From: Takakia lepidozioides
Lineage: Eukaryota; Plantae; Bryophyta
DNA: 64,000 nucleotides
Direction of reading: 5' to 3'
Assembly: GCA_030704615.1 (NCBI GenBank)
Contig: CM060733.1
Coordinates: 55,428,001-55,492,000, forward strand
Shown here: in pieces, positions 14,401 through 20,400 of the stretch
Layout of the letters: every line of letters begins with the position of its first letter
Numbering within the stretch: the first letter of the stretch is position 1
The notes under the pieces: generated by a model
What the model was told of the DNA's origin: nothing
The model's input: only the letters and a program-made list of their open reading frames with translations
Database searches by the model: none
Translations under genes and position numbers: made by a program

Positions 14401-17400
14401 GGTGTGTTCCGGGGTGGTGATAACATGGGCTGTGCGAACGAAGCTTTACCAACCTCCAGGTGGTGTATGGTTGTCAGTCTTTTCTTGACCCAGTCAGGAA
14501 TATCCTGTGGTCTCTTGTTCTTTGGTTATTTGGGATTATTTTCGAAACATGACCTCAATGAAGTGGAAATTGTTAAAGTACAATGGTACAGTAATAACCA
14601 TAACAATCTTCCATATGTCACTGGTTTGTGCAAATGAAATTGGACCAGTGACATATGGAAGATTGTGGATTCTCTCAAGTATGCTGCCACTAAGGTGGGA
14701 ATTTAATTCCCACCTACAAAGCTTGTTGTGCAGTGATGGTACCAAAATCGACATCGACTGTCAGTAAATGTTTCTTCTATGTCATCCCTCCAACCCATTC
14801 CTCCTCCTTGAGGCTGCTCTCATATAGAACTTAAATTTGTGTTTGAGAGTCAATTTTCTCCATCCTTCCTCCTTTCCTTTTGGTGGAAAGGTATCTGGTG
14901 ATGGGTCCTTCTCTCTGTTTGTCATAAGTAAATGCCCCACATTTCAAGCAAGTGCATTCTTTCTGACTGATAACAAATCACATGATTGGGTACAGGCTGC
15001 TATCAAGCACACTCCAACACTATGTGCTGCATGTATTAAAGAAGATGCTGGAGGTTTCTCCGTCTGTGTTGCAGCTCTTCCGTGAAGATGGGGTCTGGGA
15101 GGTCATGTTCTCTCAATACTTCTTCTACTTTGGACTTGGGGAGTGGGGGAACTCAGCTCTCACAAGCACCAATCTGGCTGCATTGGGTGGATCCTTGCTT
15201 GTAGCCAGGAGTGCTGCTTCAAAGGCTTCTGAGTCACATTCGACAACTAATTGTGGAGTTGAAGCAACCGAGGAAACTTTCCCGCAGATTCCTGACTCTG
15301 TGGACACTGAGCCCCTCCGCCTGGAAGTGATATCATTTGTTGAGTTGGCTGCAACTGTAAATGGCACCGTGAATAACCTGGTACCTCTTTCTAGCTTCTT
15401 ACTAGGCTGCTATCCCACGTAATTTCTTTTATTTTCTTGAACAGTGCTCGAGGCTAACATATACTGACAATTTAGTGTGGTCAAGTTGATGCGTTGCTTT
15501 GAGGGCACTATTGATAACTTTGTACTTGGTCTCTTTGGAGACATTGGCGAATAGAAGAGACGCTTTACTATGTAACATTCCCTGTGGACATAACTGGGAC
15601 GTTGTGTGGTTAACTGGAAGATTTGACGTATTTGAAAGCATAATGCTGATATCAGCACTGCTGAGGCAAAATTTATCCCAATCATATTTGGCAGTCTATT
15701 TTGAATGAGAAGTGCATAACGGTAGTAATTCATGGCTATGATTGCCATGCTAGTGTCACTGAAAGGTCCAGAACGGGTGATAGTGGTTGAGGTCAAGGAA
15801 AAGGGGCAGGCGTCGTGGGGTGCAGTCAAAAAATCCTCTGGAAACAGATGGTCTGAATCTTTGGCATTTCTGTTATTGTGACTGACAGCCAGAATGCAGC
15901 GCCCTGCTGGAGGCCCTCCGACATTGCTGGTTTCTTCCCAGCATAGCGACAATGCTAGCAAAGAGTTTGCATCGGATTCTTCAACTTGTGACAGAGCCTG
16001 CCATGAGTGCGTTTCAAAAGCTGGATGCCACCACAATTCTCTCTGAAGTTATGGAACATCAGCGGCAGGTGGGGAGTCGGTGGGTGTTGGTTGTATTGGT
16101 CTTGTATTTCGATTATCAAATTGTACTCCAAAATCTCTCAACTTTTGTTCCGCACTAAGCTAGGTATATACTTGTTGGAGGTGTCAAGGCTATAGCCCTT
16201 GCACGGCACTCTGAGAACAGAAAGGGACGGGTAGCTCAGTGGTAGAGCACCTCACCGGATTGGGGGAGGTCCTAGGTTCAATCCCTAGCCCGACCACACG
16301 CCAGTGGTTTTCCAACATGGTATCAGAGCCAAGGTTGGGGTGGTGGTCAGAATGGGTGGGCATTAGCATAAGGGCTATGCCTTGAGGGGGAGTGTTGGAG
16401 GTGTCAAGGCTATAGCCCTTGCACGACACTTTGAGAACAGAACGGGACGGGTAGCTCAGTGGTAGAGCACCCCTCCGGAATGGGGGAGGTCCTAGGTTCA
16501 ATCCCTAGCCCGACCACACGCCAGTGGTTTTCCAACATGGTATCAGAGCCAAGGTTGGGGCGGTGGTCAGAATGGGTGGGCATCAGCTATAAGGGCTATG
16601 CCTTGAGGGGGAGTGTTGGAGGTGTCAAGGCTATAGCCCTTGCACGTCACTCTGAGAACAGAAAGGGACGGGTAGCTCAGTGGTAGAGCACCTCACCGGA
16701 TTGGGGGAGGTCCTAGGTTCAATCCCTAGCCCGACCACACGCCAGTGGTTTTCCAACATGGTATCAGAGCCAAGGTTGGGGCGGTGGTCAGAATGGGTGG
16801 GCATCAGCTATAAGGGCTATGCCTTGAGGGGGAGTGTTGGAGGTGTCAAGGCTATAGCCCTTGCACGTCACTCTGAGAACAGAACGGGACGGGTAGCTCT
16901 GTGGTAGAGCACCTCACGGGATAGGGGGAGTGTTGGAGTGTCAAGGTTATAGCCCTTGCACGGCACTTTGAGAACAGAATGGGATGGGTAGCTCAGTGGT
17001 AGAGCACCCCACCGGGATGGGGGAGGTCCTAGGTTCAATCCCTAGCCCGACCACACGCCAGTGGTTTTCCAACATGGTATCAGAGCCAAGGTTGGGGCGG
17101 TGGTCAGAATGGGTGGGCATCAGCTATAAGGGCTATGCCTTGAGGGGGAGTGTTGGAGGTGTCAAGGCTATAGCCCTTGCACGGCACTCTGAGAACAGAA
17201 AGGGACGGGTAGCTCAGTGGTAGAGCACCTCACCGGATTGAGGGAGGTCGTAGGTTCAATCCCTAGCCCGACCACACGCCAGTGGTTTTCCAACATGGTA
17301 TCAGAGCCAAGGTTGGGGCGGTGGTCAGAATGGGTGGGCATTAGCATAAGGGCTATGCCTTGAGGGGGAGTGTTGGAGGTGTCAAGGCTATAGCCCTTGC

Positions 17401-20400
17401 ACGACACTTTGAGAACAGAACGGGACGGGTAGCTCAGTGGTAGAGCACCCCACCGGAATGGGGGAGGTCCTAGGTTTAATCCCTAGCCCGACCACACGCC
17501 AGTGGTTTTCCAACATATACGACTGGTCCCCACATGGTCGTTATTAAAATAGCTCTGGGCGCTGCTGGCTTAAAACGTTCATTCACCAGTAGACATGGTT
17601 TCTTATGCTCTGATTCTGAATTTGTCAGATATAGAACAGATCTGTTCACTTGGCATCCCCCTTGTGAATGGTTGTCACTGCACAGTAGCACTTCATGCTG
17701 GTCATTAAAGCCGAGCTGGTTTGGCATCACGTGCTACCCTGGAGCGGTAGCCATTCACAAGGGGGGTGCCTTCAGAATAGATTCTGTTTCGCATCTGAAA
17801 ATTTCAGAACCAAAGCGTAAGAAACTATGTGGTGGTGAATGAAGACAGGTGATATGCTGACCGGCATCAAAGGCTACTGTGAGGTGGTGGCCATCTACAA
17901 GGGGTATGCTAGTGCACAGATCTTGTTCCGCAACTGACTATTCATATGGCAGCTTTGGTTTGGTTTATTCAGCATGGGAGGGAGATCTGTTTTTGTTGAG
18001 TTGTGTTTGTGCATGTGGAGTTGTGGATGTTGGTAGTTTATCACCCAGACTTCACCTTCTCACACATATTACTGGCAGCAGGCATCCTTGAAGATTAGCA
18101 TAGAGGAGATCGGATTAAGTGGAAGCCAACCAGAACAAAAAGTTGGGATCAAGGAAGATGGAAGGAGTATTCCGCAAGTACCTGTGGAGACAGAACCATG
18201 GCCGCAAGCTAGGTGGGCTCTGTTTTCAGTCATTGCAGAGTTCTTCGCAGTGTCAGAGAAAGCGGTGGTTGAAGCTTCGCGCAATCTGAGAGCTGTAGAT
18301 GCCCTATTTAATCTCCTTTGGGACTCTAGCACAAGAACTTTCGCTCTCCGCCACATCCTCCTGCTGATGAAGGTGCTTCCATAATTCTCATCAGATGGCT
18401 GCCTTCCCTTATCTTCAACGTTTTACCTACCCGATTTCTTCGTCTGTCTCTTTCTCTCCCTCTCTCTCCCTTCTTTTCTGAATTCACTCTGCCTTTCTTC
18501 CTGAAAATTTGTTTTGTTTCTTCTTTTTCTTTTCCATCTTGTGCAGCGATGAAGGATTTTTAGTGCTTTTGTTTGTTCCTATTACTGCTGTGTTAACTCT
18601 TTAGACCTCTTGTGGTGATTACGGAGTTCCTTTTTCTTGCTTCAGTCGAGAGACTTCTCTTCCTTGTCATAACTGAAGGTGAGTAAAGCTTAGCATCTTA
18701 CCTGCACCCGGCAGTCCCTTTTTGAGTGTCTGTCTGAGCCAGCCAGTGCTGTAGGTTCTCTGGGTTTTTAAAATCTTATGTGGGACTCCAATTTTGCTCT
18801 CCTCCCTTCTCCCTTGCCCCATTGAGACCACTTCGGGTCTATGACCCCGAGGCTATGACAAAGTAGAATCAGTACAGTCTCTGGTTTTGGCAAATAGAGT
18901 CTGGTCCCTGTCTCACATACACTACTGGAAGACGCTTCTCAGGCATTGTCCATGTCTCCTTGGGTGCAGTTAGCTCCAGCATCGGAACAAGACCAAGAAG
19001 CCAAAATGAACCTGTGTTTCAAGTACTTGGAATCCTTGCCTCGAGCACAAGTTGAGTGTCGCAGCACAGAAATCAGTCTTGTTCTTGACCTGCTTGCGGG
19101 TTTGCGCGATGTGCTTCAGTCTGATCTCACTGTAAGCTCCTTTGATCATTCTTGCAGACTTTCATTTTGAACTGGAAAGCAGACTGTGAAGTGACTTCAT
19201 CTGATGAGAGAGACACTTGAGATGAAATCCTTTGTGTATGAAATCTTGTGATGAGATGAAATCCTTTGTATTTCCTTACTAATTCAATTTTGAAAATCCA
19301 TCATGACAATTCTTAAGAGGGCTGTGCAGTACTACCAAGCACTGTTTCGAGAGGGAGAGTGCTTTGTTCACATCGTCTCTCTGCTCAATGAGGATCATAC
19401 TAAAGAGGCTGGCTCTCAACTTAGCCTTGATGTTGTTATGACTTTGACTCATTTGCTTCAAGGGAATGAAGCTTCCAAGGTAAAACCCACATTCTTGCCT
19501 TTGTATTTTGGCTCTATGTGACTACAGAGGTTTATGAGTTGGAAGTTGTAATATCTCCAGTAGCCCGGAGATGGCCAGATTGGGAAATGATAATGATATA
19601 TCAGAAGGAAAGCTTTGAACATACCTTATCCCAGTCATGCTTCACGCACTGCTAAACTGAGCCCGACAGAGCGCCCTTTCTTGTCCTACCCTTGCGCATT
19701 GATCTGCATTCAACCTATTCTGCACCGGGGTAGCATGAGATCATCAGTTTAGCAGGCTTGATAACTAATGAATACTCATTCCGAGGATCAAGCATCAGTG
19801 GAGTGGATTGTCTGGTATACAGAGACAGGTGTAGATATCATTAGGGCAATTTACAGTTTCTGCTGAAAATTGAGTTTCTGCTGATCACTGTTGAAGCTGA
19901 ATTGATCTTGAAGCCTGAATGCATGGATGTATAGCTTAGAGGAAGAGAATTATCATGAAGGGACTGTTGTGCAGCCAATGACGAGTTTGGCTTTTCATTG
20001 CAGGGAGCTTTCAGGGGCCTGGTGGGTACAGGCTACAAGACCTTGCAGAGTCTGTTGATTGAGCGCCATCAGGGCAGCCCTAGCCAGGGTTTGCTCACAG
20101 CACTGTTGGATATGTTGGTTGATGGCGGCTTTCAGATGCCAGCAAACATGCTTATCCAGGTCATCATTTTCACCTTGAAGTGCTTATATCATGTACTCAT
20201 GATATGACCTTGTGGTCATAGACCCCACGCCCAGTTTGGGCGAAACAAGAGGGAACAGACAACAGATACTACCATTGTGAGGGGCTTACTTTCAGTAGTG
20301 GGACTTACCTTGGTATAAACAATTGGTTTGGGCTTTCCAGATTTCCTCTAGAAATCCCTTCACACGACATCAATCTGCTTTGTATGAGCCCAGCAATTCG

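Follow-up and report, generated by a model that had tools for sequence, protein, structure and literature searches.

What is the block of near-identical units at positions 16173–17515 of a 64,000-nucleotide (nt) stretch of the bryophyte Takakia lepidozioides (contig CM060733.1, positions 55,428,001 to 55,492,000)? The whole stretch is referred to here as the window, and all positions are those of the window. An original prediction, made from the sequence alone, described the block as an array of a miniature terminal-repeat retrotransposon (TRIM), in which each long terminal repeat (LTR) carries a tRNA cloverleaf. The analysis reported here shows the block to be, very probably, a tandemly arrayed copy of a Helenus-type TRIM with seven LTRs and five internal domains. 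It is non-coding and carries an RNA polymerase III (Pol III)-type tRNA cassette in each LTR.

Structure of the array

Direct reading and the positions of exact motifs give six full LTRs (144–145 bp) and one LTR cut to 96 bp, separated by five non-coding internal domains of 75–76 bp each (Table 1). TGTTGG starts every LTR and CCAACA ends every full LTR. Each internal domain opens with TGGTATCAGAGCCA. The primer binding site (PBS) for initiator methionine tRNA (iMet), TGGTATCAGAGC, is situated immediately after each CCAACA that precedes an internal domain. The polypurine tract (PPT), GAGGGGGAG, closes each internal domain and directly abuts the next TGTTGG. The PBS 12-mer is found five times in the window, with 0.38 occurrences expected. 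A single element (LTR-internal-LTR) measures 366 bp and has no coding capacity. The array as a whole is bounded by the 5-mer TATAC, which forms a target site duplication (TSD). This arrangement, down to an extra T at the left junction, had been set out in the original prediction and agrees with the direct reading and the motif positions.

Tandem Repeats Finder (TRF) shows periods of 220–221 over the array with matches of 94–96%, and an additional period of 95 that is caused by the cut LTR4. A BLAST search of the window with one unit yields no copy beyond the array. The sequence absent after LTR4 consists of 49 bp of LTR and a 76-bp internal domain, and the motif at the breakpoint, AGGGGGAG, is also found in the PPT, at its end. 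In LTR5, the most divergent of the repeats, two of the differences are private CpG-to-TpG changes.

A 72-nt tRNA-like sequence is found in all six full LTRs, both by ARAGORN and by Rfam RF00005, with scores of 42.8–59.9 bits where the gathering score is 29. Both the A box, TAGCTCAGTGG, and the B box, GGTTCAATCC, can be read directly in the LTRs, with one substitution in the B box of LTR7, and agree with the Pol III consensus known from tRNA genes. The minimum-energy fold is a cloverleaf for two of the three LTR variants (a and b) but not for the third (c). The fold in each complete LTR and the LTR7 substitution, both noted in the original prediction, are thus borne out. The anticodon arms are degenerate. 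ARAGORN assigns a two-base "anticodon" in five of its six calls, and the single Ser(GGA) call lacks a long variable arm, so that isotype and structure disagree. Position 33 is C instead of the universal U, and the acceptor pair 3:70 is A-A. The array LTRs therefore do not display the U33, paired acceptor stem and consistent isotype of a functional tRNA gene. Because of their degenerate anticodon arms these sequences are pseudo-tRNAs, as had been expected, even though their tRNA scores lie above threshold.

Only one run of four T residues (T4) is present in the whole 221-bp unit. It occupies LTR positions 136–139, six bases before the LTR end. Rfam shows no match of the LTRs to 5S rRNA at an E-value of up to 1 in the region 15500–18200, and no ribozyme family is among the Rfam matches to the array, including the hammerhead ribozyme by which Retrozymes are recognized. 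On their minus strand the tRNA-like parts also show Rfam matches below threshold to a plastid ycf2 leader, which were dismissed as chance.

In its 5′ part, about 30 bp upstream of the tRNA-like sequence, each LTR contains a perfect 10-bp palindrome, GGCTATAGCC (16190–16199 and its equivalents). Every internal domain has an almost identical sequence, GGGCTATGCC, just before the PPT (at 16371–16380 in one of them). These sequences could act as an upstream element of the TATA type or as a site for RNA pairing.

Table 1. Components of the Takakia array and the intron that contains it (positions in the window)
Feature	Positions	Strand	Remarks
Intron of BEACH-domain gene, GT..AG, 2,013 bp	16069–18081	+	spliced contig of run X5
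Left TSD, TATAC	16167–16171	+	read directly; extra T at 16172; same 5-mer abuts last LTR
LTR1, 145 bp, variant a	16173–16317	+	tRNA-like part 16225–16296; T4 16308–16311
Internal domain 1, 75 bp, variant x	16318–16392	+	PBS TGGTATCAGAGC at start, PPT GAGGGGGAG at end
LTR2, 145 bp, variant b	16393–16537	+	tRNA-like part 16445–16516; highest tRNA score in Rfam (59.9 bits)
Internal domain 2, 76 bp, variant y	16538–16613	+	
LTR3, 145 bp, variant a	16614–16758	+	tRNA-like part 16666–16737; 1 difference from LTR1
Internal domain 3, 76 bp, variant y	16759–16834	+	same sequence as domains 2 and 4
LTR4, first 96 bp only	16835–16930	+	ends at AGGGGGAG within anticodon arm of tRNA-like part; LTR5 follows directly
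LTR5, 144 bp, variant c	16931–17074	+	tRNA-like part 16982–17053; 10–15 differences from other LTRs
Internal domain 4, 76 bp, variant y	17075–17150	+	
LTR6, 145 bp, variant a	17151–17295	+	tRNA-like part 17203–17274
Internal domain 5, 75 bp, variant x	17296–17370	+	1 difference from domain 1
LTR7, 145 bp, variant b	17371–17515	+	tRNA-like part 17423–17494; B-box substitution at 17477; 2 differences from LTR2
Right TSD, TATAC	17516–17520	+	read directly

Dispersed copies, RNA contigs and relatives in other organisms

Host DNA run X1, RNA run X5, and runs X8 and X9 from two further organisms (B and C) were compared with the array as assembled short-read contigs, not as reads. X1 shows 560 contigs on the array and single contigs on its flanks; the summed contig depth in X1 cannot be taken as a copy number. 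Loose ends whose continuations are unlike one another are found exactly at the LTR boundaries 16317, 16393, 17074/5, 17371 and 17515. Unlike flanks at LTR boundaries are expected from many insertions and solo LTRs elsewhere, and the element is a multi-copy dispersed family. A lack of other genomic copies would have spoken against the original prediction; copies with the same LTR boundaries are present in the host DNA contigs. The a, b and c variants of the LTR are found elsewhere in the genome (X1) as well as in RNA.

Run X5 holds a correctly spliced exon of the BEACH-domain gene in which the array resides, and therefore represents RNA. Four kinds of X5 contig contain the element. These include contigs with LTR positions 1–81 of the c variant, a contig that joins the 3′ part of an LTR, an internal domain and the start of the next LTR, and chimeras of the element with unrelated transcribed sequence. 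One contig equals the LTR5 variant except at 16980 and 16985, the positions of the private CpG-to-TpG changes. The fourth kind, a contig of 72 nt, coincides exactly with the tRNA-like part (17423–17494). Its depth of 238 is the highest among the family contigs in X5; the BEACH exon has a depth of 21.7. The 72-nt contig hints at a discrete tRNA-sized RNA, although contig ends may be branch points of the assembly graph. Element-containing RNA exists, then, and its contigs are silent on the polymerase and on the RNA ends.

Runs X8 and X9 comprise several thousand million letters of contigs each. The tRNA-like part is found there in hundreds of contigs with 90–99% likeness. The LTR tail differs (ACACCAAGTGTAAAAACTTTTCACA) and again carries a T4 a few bases from its end, and the LTR start, TGTTAGAAC, is that of Helenus-1_SMo, a family described from Selaginella moellendorffii. 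At one joint, LTR follows LTR with one base between them.

No metagenome locus matched a pattern specific to the family (B box with T arm, a gap, iMet PBS). A generic pattern (B box, gap of 20–50, PBS) gave 77 metagenome and 9 viral loci. These were rejected as further copies: the stretch before the PBS is never repeated downstream, and none resembles the unit. The loci look like prokaryotic tRNA neighbourhoods.

Comparison with Helenus and other elements

In the definition of Kojima (2024; PMC10886601), Helenus elements are TRIMs whose LTRs contain a tRNA-derived sequence and which possess a PBS and a PPT; they are grouped with Cassandra and Ajax as TRIMp3. Their TSDs are 5 bp in fungi and plants, the predicted tRNAs are non-functional, element lengths are 311–1263 bp, and an origin by insertion of a short interspersed element (SINE) into an LTR has been proposed (PMC10886601). 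Tandem arrays are noted for the zebrafish family LTR-11_DR. The hosts are fungi, animals and one plant, Selaginella moellendorffii, whose Helenus-1_SMo has a 120-bp LTR and an 85-bp internal part (PMC10886601 and its supplement). Those papers after 2024 that were consulted and mention Helenus give no additional plant hosts.

The Takakia array displays the following features of this class: a short non-autonomous LTR element with no coding capacity, a tRNA sequence with A and B boxes in each LTR, a PBS after the 5′ LTR, a PPT before the 3′ LTR, a 5-bp TSD, and a dispersed multi-copy family. With its 366 bp the element falls close to the lower limit of the published lengths, and the host lineage is outside the published list. 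The statement in the original prediction that tRNA-containing TRIMs had been reported under the name Helenus was right (PMC10886601).

The closest published relative is Helenus-1_SMo, which shares with the array the short LTR with tRNA-like sequence, the iMet-type PBS, the G-rich PPT and the 5-bp TSD. A pattern search with four segments of Helenus-1_SMo (21–24 nt, 0–3 mismatches) gave matches in the array only, with a chance expectation of 0.00 for each. The a-type LTRs contain a 23-nt block of the D arm without any difference. Agreement is 21 of 24 positions for the T arm and its vicinity, again 21 of 24 for the LTR end with the PBS, and 18 of 21 for the start of the internal domain. By eye, the tRNA-like parts align without gaps and are identical at 56 of 72 positions, the differences lying mostly in the anticodon arm; the D arm is identical at 18 of 18 positions and the T arm at 14 of 17. 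Also by eye, the two elements have in common the LTR start TGTT.GA and the last ten LTR bases, TTTTCCAACA, which include the T4 six bases from the end. Both internal domains carry GTGGT..ATGG..TGGGCA in the same order and the end CTT.AGGGGGAG, and the PPT regions are alike. Two stem changes relative to Helenus-1_SMo are compensatory (5:68 G-C to A-T and 51:63 A-T to G-C).

The two elements differ in other respects. The LTR is 145 bp in Takakia and 120 bp in Selaginella, and the region upstream of the tRNA-like part (52 versus 32 bp) could not be aligned by eye. Internal domains measure 76 and 85 bp, respectively, the anticodon arms differ, and PBS position 8 is A here and G in Helenus-1_SMo. 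The hosts are different, and the Takakia copy is a seven-LTR array. Because the similarity extends beyond the tRNA-like part, it favours a common ancestry of the complete element rather than two captures of one tRNA. At the extreme ends of the element, some of the likeness could be due to constraints that similar partner elements impose on both.

Cassandra elements, which are TRIMs of vascular plants, carry a 5S rRNA-derived sequence with boxes A and C in the LTR, use the PBS TGGTATCAGAGC, form long LTR-internal-LTR arrays and are transcribed. The Takakia family shares with them LTRs that each bear a copy of a small-RNA gene of Pol III type, as well as this PBS, the arrays and the presence of RNA, but Rfam finds only tRNA in its LTRs and no 5S match, and there is no sequence relation. 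Tandemly arrayed TRIMs (TA-TRIMs) consist of at least three LTRs that share internal domains within one TSD, are known from many plants, and prefer introns (Gao et al., 2016; PMC4717578); the same survey found no TRIMs in the moss Physcomitrella. The Takakia array has both the multi-LTR form within one TSD and the intron residence, whereas the TA-TRIM families carry no small-RNA gene. Elements of the SINE2 type have a tRNA-derived head with A and B boxes and a short, non-coding body, as here. However, SINEs lack LTRs, PBS and PPT, end in an A-rich tail or one like that of a long interspersed element (LINE), and are copied by LINE enzymes, whereas the Takakia units are LTR-like repeats with PBS and PPT and without an A-rich tail.

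The original prediction thus expected too much novelty, as the class, a homologous plant family, Helenus and TRIM arrays, and residence in introns are all published. What is new is the host and the family. Slightly beyond the literature are the whole-element homology with Selaginella, the relatives in two organisms, the conserved T4 at the border of the repeat (R) and unique 5′ (U5) regions, and the RNA contigs.

Proposed life cycle and history, and the host gene

The proposed life cycle begins with Pol III. Through the A and B boxes, transcription would be initiated a few bases before the tRNA-like part, which begins at LTR position 53, perhaps aided by the CTATAG about 30 bp upstream. The T4 at LTR 136–139 would act as a weak (leaky) terminator. 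A stop at the first T4 would give a tRNA-like RNA of about 95 nt, and read-through with a stop at the next T4 a genomic RNA of about 315 nt. In the latter, R would be the tRNA-like part with an 11-nt trailer, U5 would be CCAACA, and the unique 3′ (U3) region the first ~50 bp of the LTR. Reverse transcription primed by iMet and integration with a 5-bp duplication would be carried out in trans by the proteins of an autonomous, probably Copia-type, element. The TGTTGG..CCAACA ends are typical of Copia, as in BARE-1-type elements. The original prediction of a non-autonomous LTR element with a tRNA-derived Pol III cassette, mobilised in trans, fits everything tested, with Pol III transcription itself as a putative step.

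Of the alternatives to a Pol III-transcribed TRIM, the least credible is a genuine tRNA gene cluster, or a tRNA-derived satellite or SINE array, without any LTR-retrotransposon mechanism. Such a cluster would be tandem and would give Rfam tRNA scores above the gathering threshold, as is seen here. It would leave unexplained the degenerate anticodon loops without U33, the mismatched acceptor pair and the discordant isotype, the iMet PBS directly after TG..CA repeats and the PPT directly before the next LTR, the 5-bp duplication with no A-rich tail, and the homology to the curated TRIM Helenus-1_SMo; it is thus extremely improbable. A less distant alternative accepts the element but treats its tRNA-like part as a passenger or relic, the template RNA being made by RNA polymerase II (Pol II), either with the first 50 bp of the LTR providing the promoter or through host read-through, as in ordinary TRIMs. 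Conservation speaks against this. The A box, B box and T4 six bases from the LTR end are kept here and in Selaginella while the remaining 5′ part of the LTR is unlike, a T4 near the LTR end recurs in the variant of organisms B and C, and the two compensatory changes preserve the cloverleaf stems. Moreover, 50 bp is very little space for a Pol II promoter. Pol II synthesis is therefore unlikely, though it would suit the RNA contigs that include the first 81 bp of the LTR, the chimeras with unrelated transcribed sequence and the apparently intronic position of many copies, and according to Kojima it is not proven that Helenus uses Pol III (PMC10886601).

Several points weigh against a Helenus-type element transcribed by Pol III and mobilised in trans. 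Pol III use and the start and termination sites are deduced, as contigs display neither RNA ends nor the polymerase, and Pol II transcripts that run through the many copies in introns could account for the X5 contigs. A 221-bp unit is expected to contain 0.37 T4 by chance, so that a single one is unremarkable. The likeness to Helenus-1_SMo was judged by eye and from four short patterns, not from a scored full-length alignment. The extra T between the TSD and LTR1 makes the left junction imperfect, and the number and order of the units rest on the assembly. Finally, the autonomous element with the same ends that the original prediction called for was looked for in the 64-kb window, and none was found there. 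The only other PBS-like site in the window, GGGTATCAGAGC at 46478–46489 (−), has one mismatch to the iMet PBS, and no pair of LTRs was detected around it; the site is a chance match or else belongs to a decayed element. Gypsy-type fragments (by domains) at 52–54 and 61–62 kb were considered as TRIM partners, and no link was found.

The history of the array is recorded in its variants. LTR1, LTR3 and LTR6 (a) differ from one another at 1–3 positions, LTR2 and LTR7 (b) at two, LTR5 (c) stands alone, and the cut LTR4 is nearest to a. Internal domains 1 and 5 form type x, and domains 2, 3 and 4, which are identical to one another, type y. The blocks LTR1-int1-LTR2 and LTR6-int5-LTR7 are near-duplicates with 5 differences in 365 bp. 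These patterns suggest one insertion into the intron followed by growth and reshuffling through recombination among LTRs. Because there is a single TSD, the outer ends of the array would come from one integration. Simple in-place multiplication would not give a three-variant mosaic, so exchange with other family members appears to be required, whether through ectopic recombination, through gene conversion or through a template switch between RNAs packaged together. Later in-place duplication would account for the near-duplicate blocks and for the internal domains without differences. LTR4 may have arisen by a 125-bp microhomology deletion between the GGGGGAG of the anticodon arm and that of the PPT. 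For Cassandra arrays, unequal recombination and template switching have both been proposed, and concatenated transcripts have been seen.

It is also conceivable, on a tentative footing, that a single reverse-transcription step produced the array, or its first dimer, by a template switch between two co-packaged, non-identical RNAs or by copying of a read-through multimer RNA, and that the product was inserted as a concatemer. In LTR1(a)-x-LTR2(b)-y-LTR3(a) the outer LTRs are alike (1 difference), the middle one is different (6) and the internal domains differ, as would be expected if two unlike RNAs had been copied into a dimer. The occurrence of the a, b and c variants elsewhere in the genome, the single TSD enclosing the whole array, and the Cassandra arrays, for which both one-step routes have been proposed and concatenated transcripts seen, are in keeping with this. 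Two RNAs per particle would, however, give at most three LTRs, not seven; the near-duplicate blocks and the three identical internal domains point to later in-place duplication, and ectopic recombination or gene conversion accounts for the mosaic equally well. A different doubt concerns the number of units, which could be an artefact of an over- or under-collapsed repeat in the assembly of a real element. The short-read contigs break within the repeat and none spans the array, and the flank contigs reach 26 and 27 letters into the outer LTRs, below the 31 required as bridging. Yet these flank contigs enter both outer LTRs without mismatch, and the units are non-identical, with an ordered variant pattern and a unique truncated junction that would hardly result from collapse or expansion. 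Such an artefact is accordingly quite improbable, and insertion of a single element followed by growth and reshuffling is retained as the probable history of the array.

The array makes up 1,343 of the 2,013 bp of its intron and has the same orientation as the BEACH gene. The X5 contig covers the exon 15888–16068/9, and its loose ends match 15350–15379 and 18083–18112 exactly. Pfam searches of the downstream plus-strand exons, made exon by exon, show DUF4704, PH_BEACH, Beach and NBCH_WD40 (the neurobeachin WD40 propeller). The closest Atlas cluster is "BEACH domain-containing protein B" from Streptophyta, and the top protein matches to a BEACH exon show 70% identity. The sense orientation within a BEACH-gene intron, as originally predicted, is thus confirmed by a spliced RNA contig and by the Pfam domains. 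The array-bearing intron is removed normally, and nothing points to an effect on the BEACH gene. Orthologous BEACH contigs of another plant (L087–L090) carry no such element.

Other repeats are found elsewhere in the window. Two retrotransposon fragments lie on the minus strand, at 52118–54266 (RT_RNaseH_2/RT_RNaseH and a weak RVT_1 match) and at 61445–62510 (RT_RNaseH_2 and a weak Retrotrans_gag match). At 57647–58011 a unit of ~122 bp is present three times head to tail, with 100, 91 and 64% identity to the first copy, and at 58346–58969 two short repeat families of 80–83 nt are interleaved with spacings of 154–311 bp. A direct repeat of ~165 nt, about 90% alike with one 12-base gap, is found at 48473–48640 and 49104–49285, 631 bp apart, and shows no obvious TG..CA ends or PBS.

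The LTRs score as tRNA genes, and an abundant family of this kind will inflate the tRNA gene counts of the host and its relatives in annotation. Inflated counts caused by Helenus have been shown in rust fungi (Kojima, PMC10886601). On a tentative reading in which selection acts on the RNA itself, through a cloverleaf maintained by compensatory changes and a weak T4 terminator, each LTR would be the source of a discrete tRNA-sized RNA and also the R region of a Pol III-made retrotransposon genome, and a leaky terminator together with co-packaging would explain the readily formed mosaic concatemers. The position of the conserved T4, six bases before the LTR terminus, suggests a simple and testable model in which a Pol III transcript serves as the genome of an LTR retrotransposon. 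Plant tRNA-carrying TRIMs would extend past the single published species, with a lineage conserved across distant hosts, much like Cassandra. It is possible, as a tentative extension, that the plant Helenus lineage is old and widespread in seed-free plants, common to Selaginella, the Takakia host and at least two further large-genome organisms, and that selection acts on the RNA itself, that is, on the cloverleaf and the weak T4.

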